Assembly (NCBI GenBank): GCA_025786725.1
Contig: JAHLTZ010000034.1
Span: forward strand, 220,973 to 284,972
From: Syncephalis fuscata S228
Lineage: Eukaryota; Fungi; Zoopagomycota
Direction of reading: 5' to 3'
Length of the DNA stretch: 64,000 nucleotides
Below are positions 15,879 to 28,600 of this stretch, piece after piece (within the stretch, counting starts at the first letter, position 1; every line of letters begins with the position of its first letter). Both the position numbers and the translations under genes were made by a program. The notes below the pieces were generated by a model. That model worked only from the letters and a program-made list of their open reading frames with translations. It was not told the DNA's origin and searched no databases.

Positions 15879-15951
15879 GCTTCCTTGGCTCAGTTGGTAG
15901 AGCGTCAGTCTCATAATCTGAAGGTCGCCAGTTCGAGCCTGGCAGGGAGCA
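15879..15951 (+). tRNA. tRNA-Met (CAT), elongator type
   Basis: GCTTCCT TG GCTC AGTTGGTA GAGC G TCAGT CTCATAA TCTGA AGGTC GCCAG TTCGAGC CTGGC AGGGAGC A forms a full cloverleaf with A and B boxes. Confidence 0.97.
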
Positions 15952-16731
15952 ATGTAGCCGCGCATAGCCATGTAGCTACGCATCCATATATTTTTGCAAC
16001 ATGTACTGTTTATTTTGTTAAAAATATAGCCATCTATACTGTAAAGCGCCAATTTTTATTAATTTTTAGTCATTTTACCCAACAGACATTGATTAATATA
16101 GGTTTGCATCAATAAATTAGCAAACTATTGTTTATGAAATGTGTTTAGATAAACGACAACATAGTATTGTAAATTATTTACTTGGTAGAGCTATCATTTG
16201 TCTATATAGCTTGTAAACATGTAAATTAACAACAAATTAATAAAATGCTATAATGTATTAGATATATTAAGCAATATGATATCGTATTTTATTTATATTA
16301 TCATCATAGCAATCAGATTATATAATAATGCCGGTCTATCCAAGCTATCAAACAAATAAATGAACTACATTTGGCGTAGCTCATATCTAACGTTTATTCT
16401 TTAATTACAAATAGTTATTATTAAAATACGTACTAACTATAGTACTGCCAATTGAGAATACTAAATAATACACTACATGTTATAATAATTAGCCTATAGA
16501 ATACACTTATTAATTATGATATGTTTAATAAAATGGACTGTATTTTATTTATTATATATTCAAGTATTACTAACATATACATATATATAATAAATTCATT
16601 GATGTTTGATGTAATTTCTTACACAATACTACTACAACTTATTATAAATATACTACTTTAATAATAATAATAATTAAATGGTTTAAATCGAGTTAAATTA
16701 TAGCAATCTATATAATATAATAAAATAAACT

Positions 16732-20451: not shown

Positions 20452-22947
20452 TAATAGTGGCTATATCATATAACTTACGCTCATCTAATCCACCAATAGC
20501 GTTAAAATCAACACCACGCGATACACCCAATGGATCAGTATCGGCCAACACCATATCTATACATCATGTATATATATATATTACTATATTAATATACTAA
20601 TATTACTATTAATCATATTATTAATTACCTTTCTTACGTAGTCCAGGTGGACCTCGATCATCAGGCAATTCAGCAATATTAAATGGCAGTACTGGTTGAG
20701 CACCTGATCCGCCATTCATTACATTGTTGCCGCCACCACCTGCTGCTGCCTTGCCACCATCACTATCACTATCTGAACCTGGTCTATATAACATCATTAT
20801 ATTAAGTATAATCAGTTAATCAATTGATACGTTATATTAATACACATTGCCTACCTAAACATAAAGGCATGTCCACCACGTGGTACGCGTCGTCGGTTTG
20901 GATTGGCAAAGTTTAAAGAGGCAGCATTATTCATATCACGTGCAGCATTGGGTCCACTAGCACCACCGCGTCGGCCATTGGCATTCTGTTCAGCCTTGCG
21001 CATATTCGACTCAAGCATAGAATTGAAATAACTAACTTCATCGTAGTTCTTTGGTGCGGCCCGTGTTCGTAAACGGTATTTACGCGGTGTGCCATTCAGT
21101 CCATCTTCATCTTCATCCTCTTCATGGCCCTCGGTATCTTCTAAATGACCGTGCAAATGGTGGTGGTGATGTGCTTGGGCACTGACTGAGGGTGGCACTG
21201 GCTGTCCATTATCTAATCGCTGATAATTAACACGATTACGTTGCCGTAGACCGGCCCGGCCCGTTGGCACATATTTCTCTACGTTCTTCATATCAACGCC
21301 GTCTTCATCTTCATCAAAGGAATTAGTCATTCCAGCTGTTTCTCTCAACCGGTCAAGGAATCCTCGTTTAGTTGATCGAGCTGGAAGATTACGGCCCCGT
21401 CCACCGGTTGCTACTGTCTTTGACGCGGTTGGTGGATTAGTATTTGATGCAGTAGTAGAATTGGAACGACGTGTTCGTAACTCCATGGTAGAATGTCTTA
21501 CTTGAGTAGTTTTGCCACCTGTGGACATAGTGGCACTTGTAGCAGCGTAATTGGCACGGGCTGAACTACGACGGCGTGGCCTGCCATAGTCACCATCGTC
21601 ATCGTCATCGTCATCGTGGTCGTCCCCGTCTTCATCGTCGTCTTCATCATGCTCTACATTCAGTTCCGTTCCATGATTATCCTCGCTGTTGTGATCTTCA
21701 TCCATTGGAACGTAGTTATCGTCATCATCGCTATGAATAGACTGTCGCTGTCGTTGTAATCGACTACTACGGCGTGTTTGAGCTGTATCATGATCATGAT
21801 CAGCGTTAATAGCTGCTTCTGTATTGCTGTTATTTATACTGGTCGATTGGTGATTACGTAGTGATAGTCTCGATTGCCGTAATGTTCCTCTATGTCTTAA
21901 ACTGCTTGATGTATTGTCATTCATATAATCGTCTTGGTTATTATCGTCTTCATCGTGGGCATCAAGTGCGTAGGATAGACCATTATTACGACGTCGATTA
22001 TGTAAATGGTCCTGTAACTTTGTATTTGATTCATCTTCATTGATGACATCATCACTAACTAGTGCTGCTTCTAAATCGGCTTCACTTGGTTCTGCATATG
22101 ATCGTCGATTACGAATACGTAAAGACCGACCCGTTGATACCTCTGGCTCTCCTTCTTCCCCTTCTTCTTCGTGTGTTGCTGCTTTCAATGCTGCTGGATA
22201 TCGAATACGAAGTTTAATACCATTTCCGCTAATTTCAGTTCCAGTAATTGATGGTAATCCACTTGTAACTGGCGTAACACTAGGTAAGTTAGTATTTGTA
22301 TTGTTTAAAAGCTGTCCTGTAATTGCTTCAGTAGTAGCAGTAAGTGTTGCTGTAGTTGAAGTTATACTATAACTGTTTGAGCCATCTCCTAGATTTTGGC
22401 TATTAATTGTTGTAGTAGATGCCATTCGTCGCCGTTTAACACCAATGACTCGACCGTCAGTATCATCTTCTTCGTCATTGCCGTTATCTTCATCTTGATT
22501 AGTATAGCCACTATGGACATGTTCATTGTTGTTGTTGTTGCTGTTATTGTTACCGATAATAGTATTATTGCTATTGGTGCCAACAATATTATCCAATGTT
22601 ACTACACCTTGAAGTGATAACTCTTCATCTACTGGTTCTTCATCAGATAGTGCAACAACATTACGCCCACGACGTAAACGACGTCCAAGAGGTGCTGCAG
22701 TGGATAGATCGTCGTTACTATTGTCGCTCATATTGCCACTAAATGTGTTGACACTCGTTTGTTGTTCAACGGCAATATCACCACTCATGTTAAATAAACT
22801 TTGATCTGGTAGTATCATAGGCCCCTCAAAACCTGGTGGCATAAAATTCATAGGCTGACCACCATTATTTGCTGCGGCGGCGGCTGCGGCGGCTGCAACT
22901 TGCATCAAAAACTGCTCCTCTTCTTTTGAAAATAAAGTAGGCTGCAT
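16732..22947 (-). CDS. YTA7: AAA+ ATPase/bromodomain histone chaperone (Yta7/Abo1/ATAD2), many exons
   Basis: Long acidic disordered N-terminal exon, Walker A (FHGPPGTGKTLMARALA), FMRKGADCLSKWVGEAERQLRLLF, QVVVIGATNRVDAIDPALRRPGRFDREFYF, second AAA domain (FRPRLLIAGEPGMGQ) and a degenerate bromodomain region. Stop in the last exon (...DSDSE*) at 16732. Confidence 0.95.
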
Positions 22948-26700: not shown

Positions 26701-27506
26701 CGGTATTACTGCAGGTAGCTACACGCTATCTAACAAGCTAGTGCCAGTGCAATAATAATGGCCATAGTCATACTCATCACTATACAGTACAGACTATATG
26801 CACTATGCTTGTTCCTTTTCCCTTATTTTACGCCCACTGCACTCTTTCTATTTCTTATTTACAACTACTTGCATCTATATTCTTTATTCATTACAATCCA
26901 CATACAAGTATAATGGTAAGTAGATCCACTACATGCACGTCACACTTGAGTCAGCCTTTCCTTTCTTTCATATCATATTGCTTGTTTGCTTTGTTTTATT
27001 ATTCCAGTGAATACCATTTTGTTGGCTATAACATACAGCATGTATGTATGCTAGTCATCTACAATATATGCTTCCTTGTTATTGTTTATGTTTATCGTAT
27101 AATGCGCTACATTGCGCTGCCACCTACTACAGCTACTAGATAACAATATGCATATGCTAGTGAATGGTAATTATATTATATTACTGCACATATATATATA
27201 TATTGACCACACTACTCATATATGCTTTTGCTGTTATTTGCCGACTTGTTAATATGTTTCTTTATTGTATTGTGCTGGTAATGATAATAGCTATATTGTT
27301 AGATTACATGCATGTACTATTCTTGTCATTGCATAACTATTCCTTTATACGTGCTATGCTTTATTTGTTGTTGCTTCTGTGTGTACATGTTTATTTTATG
27401 TATGATGCAATCTTGGGTGTGTATATGCGTAATCAAATGATAAAACAGCCACGGTTTTACGTAAAACAGAAATTATGAATGGCATGCAAAAAACTGCCTA
27501 TATTAC

Positions 27507-27625
27507 AACTACGTTCATTGCGCCTAGAAAGCACCGGATCCCGTCCGATCTCCGAAGTTAAGTTAGGCCGCGCTTCTGTAGTACTGCGGTGGGGGACCAC
27601 GCGGGAATGAGAAGTAATGTAGTTT
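27507..27625 (+). rRNA. 5S rRNA (dispersed copy)
   Basis: 119 nt. Helix I is AACTACGTT/AATGTAGTT. Contains GAAAGCACCGGATCCCGTCCGATCTCCGAAGTTAAG and GTAGTACTGCGGTGGGGGACCACGCGGGAA. Compensatory pairs GCTTCT/AGAAGT are retained. Confidence 0.95.
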
Positions 27626-27631
27626 CTATAA

Positions 27632-27706
27632 GCTCGCTTAGCTCAGTTGGTTTAGAGCGTGGTGCTAATAACGCCAAGGTCACAGGTTCGATCCCTGTAG
27701 TGAGCA
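27632..27706 (+). tRNA. tRNA-Ile (AAT)
   Basis: GCTCGCT TA GCTC AGTTGGTTTA GAGC G TGGTG CTAATAA CGCCA AGGTC ACAGG TTCGATC CCTGT AGTGAGC A, followed by TTTT. Confidence 0.97.
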
Positions 27707-28600
27707 TTTTGCTGCGTTTTCAAGTGTACTGACGCTTTTTTTGCTAAAACATTCATCTAGCTGTCTAGACGCACTGTATATTTATTTTTGCAAAGCTAGA
27801 ACGGCTAAAATAAAGCTAAACCCATATGGGAGGCTGTCAAAGTTGCGGTGTTTACGCAAACTGATGATTTTATTGAACAAATATATTAATATTGCACATT
27901 TGAACTGCAACTATTTTATTCAGTTCTATCGATTGTTTTACTGTTAGAGCGTATAGTCTATATATCAATTAGTTATTGAACGTAATAATCATAGCAATAA
28001 CAGTAATCATAATCGTAATAATAATAGTGGAAACAATGGTTTATTTTGTTATATTCTATATAATTATTTATGTAATAACAACACATGCATATTGATAATT
28101 CAATTATTGTACTAGGCGATTTAAATTGTTGGTTAATACTTATCAGTTTGATAGTTTGTATTTGTAACGATAACAATAACGTGTGTGTTGTTTTAAATAT
28201 AAAAATACTAACTTTACTACCCAAGTGTAATAATGAGATTATTTATTGGTACCCACATTGGTATTAGCCATTGTAGTATACAGTAATAAAATTGTGATTG
28301 TTATTAGTATGTTAGTTGGATATATATCATTAGTAGTAATGTATAATGAAATAATATTAATTCAATTCAACAAACATTGCACACATGTAATAGTCTAATA
28401 GCCACACTAGAAATAGGTGCATTTCTCTCTATTAAGCACGTATAAAATAAAAACGAGCAAAAGAAAAATGCAAGAATAACATGCGGCCCATCAAGGTATC
28501 AACATAGAAAAGCCAATCGAAAGAATAATGACCAGCAGCTGCCATCATCCGTGCAGCAGCGGCAACTACAGTAGTGATCTTGATTATTATTATTGTACGT

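Follow-up and report, generated by a model that had tools for sequence, protein, structure and literature searches.

The 64-kb window analysed here is positions 220,973 to 284,972 of contig JAHLTZ010000034.1 in the assembly GCA_025786725.1 of the fungus Syncephalis fuscata S228, and coordinates below refer to it unless a contig or locus is named. It contains a 5S ribosomal RNA (rRNA) gene that is followed, six nucleotides (nt) further on and on the same strand, by a complete gene for tRNA-Ile(AAT). The segment 27507-27742 is probably (we put the probability at about 0.8) one of 22 obligate RNA polymerase III (Pol III) dicistrons in which the 5S gene comes first, and the joint transcript of which would be cut by RNase P. 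The evidence consists of the anatomy of the unit, its recurrence at every 5S gene found in the S. fuscata genome, the reciprocal linkage of the tRNA genes and the presence of the same arrangement in two sister species. The textbook Pol III gene stands by itself and has its promoter inside the gene; dicistrons are rare in nature.

The unit in the window consists of the following parts (a run of n T residues is written Tn here and below):

27507-27625, plus strand: 5S rRNA gene (Rfam RF00001, 106.2 bits compared to a gathering score of 38, model positions 1-120)
27626-27631, plus strand: 6-nt spacer CTATAA, which has no T run (read from the sequence)
27632-27706, plus strand: tRNA-Ile(AAT) gene (ARAGORN; Rfam RF00005, 63.6 bits)
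27707-27742, plus strand: terminator cluster, consisting of T4 at 27707-27710, T4 at 27717-27720 and T7 at 27736-27742

The 5S gene is intact, 119 nt long and of the eukaryotic type, and its 3' end is the TTT at 27623-27625. It contains the internal control region of a type-1 promoter, namely box A, IE (the intermediate element) and box C. Its sequence is the same as that of 11 other S. fuscata copies and is at most 1 nt away from 20 of the 21 others. The tRNA gene has an A box at about 27639-27650 and a B box at about 27685-27695, both read from the sequence, and its anticodon, AAT, is the eukaryotic cytosolic type for tRNA-Ile. The first T4 is situated right behind the tRNA, at 27707-27710, and the dinucleotide GC directly follows both the first and the last T run of the terminator cluster. 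The spacer is predicted to serve as the 3' trailer of the 5S rRNA and the 5' leader of the tRNA at the same time, with the RNase P cut at its 3' edge. In the predicted fold of the 204-nt precursor the 5S rRNA forms its Y-shape and the tRNA its cloverleaf separately from each other, and the spacer that links them is unpaired. A sequence-only reading of this DNA had described an intact 5S gene ending in T3, the six nucleotides CTATAA, a complete tRNA-Ile and only then the first T4, and this description turned out to be right in every detail.

The same reading had placed the locus outside any ribosomal DNA (rDNA) array, which is borne out by the distribution of the other rRNA genes. An Rfam scan of the window found no rRNA other than the 5S, and the assembly's only 5.8S genes are on contigs C187 and C202, so the 5S locus of the window lies outside the rDNA. 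Neither of these two rDNA contigs gave a match in the genome-wide 5S scans. The possibility that the pair is a fragment of an organellar or bacterial rrn operon was considered and rejected, because there is no 16S or 23S neighbor in the window and the flanks are nuclear S. fuscata genes. A window ORF of 698 aa (20851-22947, minus strand) has 100% identity to an S. fuscata protein at NCBI. Two long open reading frames (ORFs) in the window matched no Pfam family.

The arrangement found in the window is the rule throughout the S. fuscata assembly (29.4 Mb in 371 contigs). A covariance-model scan and blastn located 22 5S genes on 20 contigs, all 22 of the blastn candidates being scored. Each of the 22 has a same-strand tRNA gene 5-7 nt from its 3' end, and ARAGORN found one tRNA per 3-kb locus. 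The partners are tRNA-Gly(GCC) in seven units, tRNA-Asp(GTC) in five, tRNA-Ile(AAT) in four, and tRNA-Glu(CTC) and tRNA-Lys(CTT) in three units each, and the sequence of the spacer is specific to the tRNA family. T4 is absent from the 5S end and the spacer in all 22 units, of which 15 have 5S genes ending in T3 and 7 in T2. A run of T4-T6 starts 0-6 nt past the tRNA in every unit, and is usually followed by GC and then by a second T run. The sequence hallmarks of a Pol III dicistron are thus present: two genes on the same strand, a few nucleotides apart, no run longer than T3 between them, and a terminator after the second gene. The 5S copies, compared by blastn, are full length and 98-100% identical, and none of the 22 is degenerate.

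As a control, the exact 21-mer of the 5S box C was used to collect 80 metagenome loci containing 5S genes of other eukaryotes, 75 of which could be evaluated. Seventy-two of these 75 environmental genes have a T4 of their own at or just past the 3' end. A same-strand tRNA gene within 45 nt was found in a single case, and T4 still intervenes there. The Syncephalis-type layout occurs in none of the 80 loci. The 5S-tRNA layout is far beyond chance, and other 5S genes with this type of sequence do not, as a rule, have it.

A looser association was noticed in metagenome contigs of a group of marine eukaryotes, in which a same-strand tRNA gene comes close after the 5S gene. The gap between the 5S gene and a tRNA-Arg gene is 14 nt in L109, and the gaps are 80-130 nt in L077, L096, L101 and L136. 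T4 is present at each 5S end, and these loci look like clusters of Pol III genes, not like terminator-less fusions.

The linkage is almost as strict when it is viewed from the side of the tRNAs. According to blastn searches of the S. fuscata genome with each partner tRNA, all of the Ile-AAT (4/4), Asp-GTC (5/5), Gly-GCC (7/7) and Glu-CTC (3/3) genes found are linked to a 5S gene. There are three 5S-linked copies of Lys-CTT and one solo gene (L039, G000:C279:227121-227194). Apart from this gene, the searches showed no member of the five partner species that is not part of a 5S unit. It is identical in sequence to the linked copies, has an AT-rich upstream region and possesses its own terminator, T4 followed by GC. 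A related Lys-TTT gene is also present in the genome. The terminators of solo tRNA genes have the same signature as those of the units, T4-T6 followed by GC; the first run is just T4 in 8 of 17 genes and is never shorter.

Within the assembly, 5S rRNA, any Asp tRNA, the main Ile and Gly tRNAs and Glu-CTC can come from these units only. Because 5S rRNA and four tRNA species have no other assembled source, both halves of the unit must be expressed and cannot be silent copies. The sequence-only reading had allowed for the pair being a one-off silent copy. This alternative is answered by the recurrence of the pairing at all 22 5S genes of the genome and by the fact that no gene for 5S rRNA, Asp-GTC, Gly-GCC, Ile-AAT or Glu-CTC was found outside the units.

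Loci in the sister species were reached by way of the orthologs of three proteins encoded next to units in S. fuscata. In Syncephalis plumigaleata (L183), a 5S gene, a 6-nt spacer and tRNA-Ile(AAT) have the neighbors that also flank the unit of the window, an EB1-like gene on one side and an unnamed ORF on the other, and the nearby tRNA-Met gene is retained as well. Beside the ortholog of an aminopeptidase gene, a 5S gene followed by tRNA-Gly(GCC) is present both in S. plumigaleata (L190) and in S. pseudoplumigaleata (L191). Another S. plumigaleata locus (L195), about 8 kb from the ortholog of an F-box/WD40 gene, contains a 5S gene followed by tRNA-Asp(GTC). With respect to the flanking gene, the Gly unit and the Asp unit of S. 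plumigaleata are inverted. The 5S-first order and the spacing of 5-7 nt are found in all four units of the sister species. The 5S sequences are identical within a species and differ between species at 13-15 of the 119 positions. Since the units occupy orthologous places and the 5S sequences differ to this extent, the arrangement, with at least three of its partner tRNAs, predates a substantial divergence. Recurrent 5S-tRNA pairs in relatives, which the sequence-only reading had suggested looking for, are thus found beside orthologous genes in two sister species. At the one locus of Thamnocephalis sphaerospora that was compared (L192, at the aminopeptidase ortholog) there is neither a 5S nor a tRNA gene, and the evidence for conservation applies to the genus Syncephalis only.

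Two other tRNA genes were noticed in the vicinity of the Ile units. In S. plumigaleata, a tRNA-Pro(CGG) gene (L183:5165-5239, plus strand) is arranged head-to-head with the 5S-tRNA-Ile unit. It is 89 nt from the 5S start, so that the two Pol III units share a very short divergent upstream region; no tRNA gene is present at the matching place in S. fuscata. The other gene, tRNA-Met(CAT) of the window (in the interval 15879-15996), has an unusually long 3' trailer. There is no T run for 40 nt past its 3' end, and the first T5 is at about 15992. The identical copy L046 has the same trailer, and the syntenic tRNA-Met gene of S. plumigaleata has T5 within 4 nt.

The sequence-only reading had also raised the question of whether TFIIIA is intact in this organism. 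A scan for C2H2 fingers located a multi-finger TFIIIA-like gene with open exons, which was then searched exon by exon:

G000:C317, about 562005-563868 (L070:506-2369), plus strand: TFIIIA-like gene with 9-10 C2H2 fingers in several open exons

For the exon that encodes fingers 4-5, the best match, which is in register, is Xenopus TFIIIA (1tf6 residues 107-160, E 3e-19). The exon with fingers 2-3 matches TFIIIA residues 41-95, but WT1 scores higher, and the best match of a third exon is yeast TFIIIA (8ffz). Judging from these matches, the gene likely encodes the S. fuscata TFIIIA. The presence of a TFIIIA-like factor makes the classical type-1 route the simplest reading of how the units are transcribed.

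The region directly upstream of the 5S gene contains a block that could take part in initiation:

27455-27506, plus strand: proximal upstream block of about 50 nt, present in 20 of the 22 units; candidate promoter or TFIIIB region

The block is also found in L003 and L004, two units that lack the more distal repeat described further below. Its mean pairwise identity is 0.80, compared to 0.59 in the adjacent interval (-100 to -53) and 0.71-0.76 further upstream. It is absent from the solo tRNA genes, the upstream regions of which are AT-rich and contain TATA-like runs.

These elements suggest the following mechanism. Pol III would start at position +1 of the 5S gene, brought there by the gene's internal control region with the TFIIIA-like factor, TFIIIC and TFIIIB as intermediaries, and the upstream block would possibly assist initiation. 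The T2 or T3 at the 5S end would not constitute a usable terminator, and the polymerase would continue across the spacer of 5-7 nt and across the tRNA gene, and stop at the T4-T7 cluster past the tRNA. Cleavage by RNase P at the 5' end of the tRNA would also free the 5S rRNA with a tail of 5-7 nt, which a 3' exonuclease of the Rex1 type would trim. The 3' end of the tRNA would be formed as in any pre-tRNA.

Several observations weigh against this explanation. T4 suffices as a terminator in this genome, as the solo tRNA genes show, yet 15 of the 22 units have a T3 at the 5S end, only one residue shorter, and weak termination at T3 is conceivable. The linked tRNAs keep intact A and B boxes, and some independent initiation is possible. 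The 5S-Gly junction of S. plumigaleata (L190:12409-12420, minus strand), unlike the 22 junctions of S. fuscata, contains a T4, which could be a leaky terminator. Because T4 is a common terminator length and occurs at this junction, read-through may be incomplete in some Syncephalis units. The upstream block of S. fuscata is not kept in the sister species, and a different block is common to the Ile and Asp upstream regions of S. plumigaleata. As the S. fuscata block is, moreover, only modestly better kept than its surroundings (0.80 compared to 0.71-0.76), the case for an upstream promoter element is weak, and the idea of a strongly constrained promoter at this position loses ground. Finally, the figure of 22 out of 22 refers to assembled genes, and 5S genes of another type might be present in DNA that is missing from the 371 contigs.

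Some of these points would fit a pair of overlapping but independent Pol III units. The 5S transcript would then stop non-canonically at T2-T3 or in the spacer, the tRNA would be transcribed from its own boxes with TFIIIB placed on the 3' part of the 5S gene, and the close spacing would be a result of compaction or recombination. The canonical A and B boxes and the T4 at one S. plumigaleata junction agree with this explanation, as does the Lys-CTT gene that works solo with a sequence identical to that of its linked copies. Among the findings reported in PMC3141230 is non-canonical termination by Pol III in human cells. Nevertheless, independent transcription appears quite unlikely. The 5S end is just T2 in seven S. 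fuscata units, whereas none of the examined solo tRNA genes terminates at less than T4. The spacing of 5-7 nt, which is kept in all 22 units and in the four sister units, would be needless if the two genes were independent. Furthermore, the interval from -45 to -10 of a linked tRNA, its would-be TFIIIB site, falls inside the 5S gene and therefore has a GC content of 57%, compared to 25% in the 17 solo genes. Acker et al. 2008 (PMC2566860) state that in vivo the promoter of the upstream gene drives transcription of tandem Pol III genes, and that TFIIIB is at a disadvantage when it has to assemble on an upstream gene rich in GC.

A hybrid promoter, as proposed in the sequence-only reading, is an unlikely explanation too. 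TFIIIC bound to the B box of the tRNA, and perhaps to box A of the 5S gene, would in that case place TFIIIB upstream of the 5S gene without the participation of TFIIIA. A B box is indeed situated about 180 nt past the start of every 5S gene, and there is a precedent in Yarrowia, where tRNA promoters drive 5S genes without TFIIIA (PMC2566860). However, a TFIIIA-like gene has been kept in S. fuscata with its exons open, the 5S genes retain the standard box A, IE and box C, and the known tandem Pol III genes use the upstream gene's own promoter (PMC2566860). It is still far less probable that the units are copies of a mobile element or of one resembling short interspersed elements, an assembly artefact or a pseudogene family that has no bearing on expression. 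The units are dispersed, and 18 of them carry a common upstream repeat, as a mobile family might. However, the 22 5S genes show neither truncation nor decay, the units occupy neighbor-matched positions in three independently assembled species, and they are the only source of 5S rRNA and four tRNA species. The repeat, for its part, does not occur at the orthologous loci in the sister species, a pattern that favors concerted evolution over transposition.

The only natural 5S dicistron described so far is that of Yarrowia lipolytica, in which the tRNA comes first and under half of the 5S genes take part. In this yeast, 48 of 108 dispersed 5S genes follow a tRNA gene at a distance of 4-7 nt, and their transcription starts from the tRNA promoter and does not involve TFIIIA (PMC2566860). 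The partners are Gly-GCC, Asp-GTC and Glu-CTC, and there is also a Lys-CTT-Glu-CTC-5S tricistron (PMC2566860). The tRNA-first order that the sequence-only reading had given for Yarrowia is the one reported by Acker et al. 2008. The two systems are alike in that dispersed 5S genes are fused to tRNA genes, the unit has a single terminator at its end and a TFIIIA gene is retained. The partners are non-random and largely common to both (Gly-GCC, Asp-GTC, Glu-CTC and Lys-CTT), with Ile-AAT found only in Syncephalis. In contrast to Yarrowia, the 5S gene comes first in all 22 S. fuscata units and in all four sister units, the fusion extends to every 5S gene found in S. fuscata, and hardly any gene of the partner tRNA species stands alone. 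Because they lack the tRNA-first order that defines the Yarrowia type, the Syncephalis units do not belong to it. The tRNA promoter drives the unit in Yarrowia and TFIIIA is dispensable, whereas in S. fuscata the 5S promoter is upstream, so that synthesis of the linked tRNAs is predicted to require the 5S/TFIIIA pathway.

Other systems share some of the properties of the Syncephalis units. Engineered 5S rRNA-tRNA-single guide RNA (sgRNA) CRISPR cassettes work in Humicola insolens (PMC8542335) and in Rhodotorula toruloides and others (reviewed in PMC8542773). They have the 5S-first order of the Syncephalis units, with a further RNA downstream of the tRNA; they are transcribed by Pol III, and RNase P and RNase Z release the parts, so that a design of this kind can function in fungal cells. 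Unlike the Syncephalis units, they are artificial and do not supply the cell with 5S rRNA or tRNA. Schizosaccharomyces pombe and hemiascomycetes have tandem tRNA-tRNA genes and plants have tRNA-snoRNA genes, as cited in PMC2566860, that yield two Pol III products from one transcript, which is under the control of the upstream gene's internal promoter and is processed afterwards. Both promoters in these pairs are of type 2, however, and no 5S gene is involved. In bacterial and plastid rrn operons, of which that of E. coli is an example treated in PMC5179076, the 5S rRNA and a distal tRNA follow each other on one precursor, from which RNase P releases the tRNA. These operons are transcribed by a bacterial polymerase and have the order 16S-23S-5S, whereas the 5S gene of the window is stand-alone, nuclear and of the eukaryotic type. 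The 5S genes of Leishmania are low-copy, dispersed and linked to clusters of tRNA genes (PMC6562600); linkage is all that is described there, and terminator-less fusion is not reported. A full-text search of the literature found no description of natural 5S-first units or of 5S genes in Syncephalis.

The Syncephalis units thus have the reverse order to those of Yarrowia. In S. fuscata they take in all the 5S genes found and practically all genes for the five partner tRNAs, and the arrangement is present in three species. If the joint transcript exists, it would be the first natural case of tRNA synthesis that hangs on a type-1 (5S/TFIIIA) promoter. The 3' end of the 5S rRNA would then be derived from RNase P cleavage and not from termination, and the supply of ribosomes and of tRNAs would be hard-wired together. 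A broader proposal, to which we give rather less than even odds, is that Syncephalis as a genus makes its 5S rRNA, together with four or five of the most-used tRNAs (all Asp, the main Ile and Gly, Glu-CTC and most Lys-CTT), exclusively from 5S-first dicistrons, by way of the TFIIIA pathway and at a fixed transcriptional ratio of 1:1, the same partners having been reached independently by Yarrowia. If this is correct, two distant fungal lineages would have independently coupled 5S rRNA to the same high-demand tRNAs. The units also provide a natural template for the 5S-tRNA guide-RNA cassettes, which were built by trial and error in fungal engineering.

In addition to the proximal block, a longer stretch upstream of the 5S gene is common to most of the S. 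fuscata units. It was delineated by an all-against-all blastn comparison of the 22 loci:

26716-27454, plus strand: 5S-associated repeat, with weaker similarity as far as about 26290

In this comparison, homology between units extends 0.7-1.4 kb upstream at 66-76% identity. When the segment 26700-27450 was searched against the S. fuscata genome by blastn, the repeat, 0.8-1.3 kb in length, was found at 18 places, all directly 5' of 5S genes, and nowhere else. The 17 repeat-bearing units other than that of the window include L001, L005, L006, L009, L011-L013 and L015-L022. The repeat is T-rich and G-poor on the 5S strand. The possibility that it is a gene was rejected, because tblastx similarity runs through all frames including stops and there is no conserved ORF. 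Rfam gave no match for it beyond a chance-level one (E 0.31).

The sister species lack the repeat at their orthologous loci. Since these loci are older than the species split, spread or homogenisation of the repeat must have taken place within S. fuscata. It is probably a product of concerted evolution, and would constitute a clean example of this process among dispersed loci. Three units with different tRNAs, L005, L015 and L019 (Ile, Asp and Lys), are 94-97% identical from about 1.1 kb upstream through the 5S gene and diverge at the tRNA. Conversely, the Gly units L007 and L010 are 100% identical from -3 to +1618 and have different upstream regions. This mosaic indicates that the breakpoints of exchange are at the edges of the 5S gene. 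Both the repeat and its breakpoints at the 5S gene resemble the five-S-associated repeats (FSARs, CenA) of Schizosaccharomyces, in which the flanks of 5S genes are homogenised, apparently by 5S-mediated recombination (PMC10085805). The FSARs are centromeric and some are coding, whereas the S. fuscata repeat is non-coding and confined to the 5' side of 18 of the 22 units.

The most distal part of the repeat, about 400 bp in length, also stands alone. It is found downstream of an Asp unit (L002, +800 to +1190 from the 5S gene) and upstream of L003 and L004 (-715 to -1109), which have none of the rest of the repeat, and it may be a separate dispersed element.

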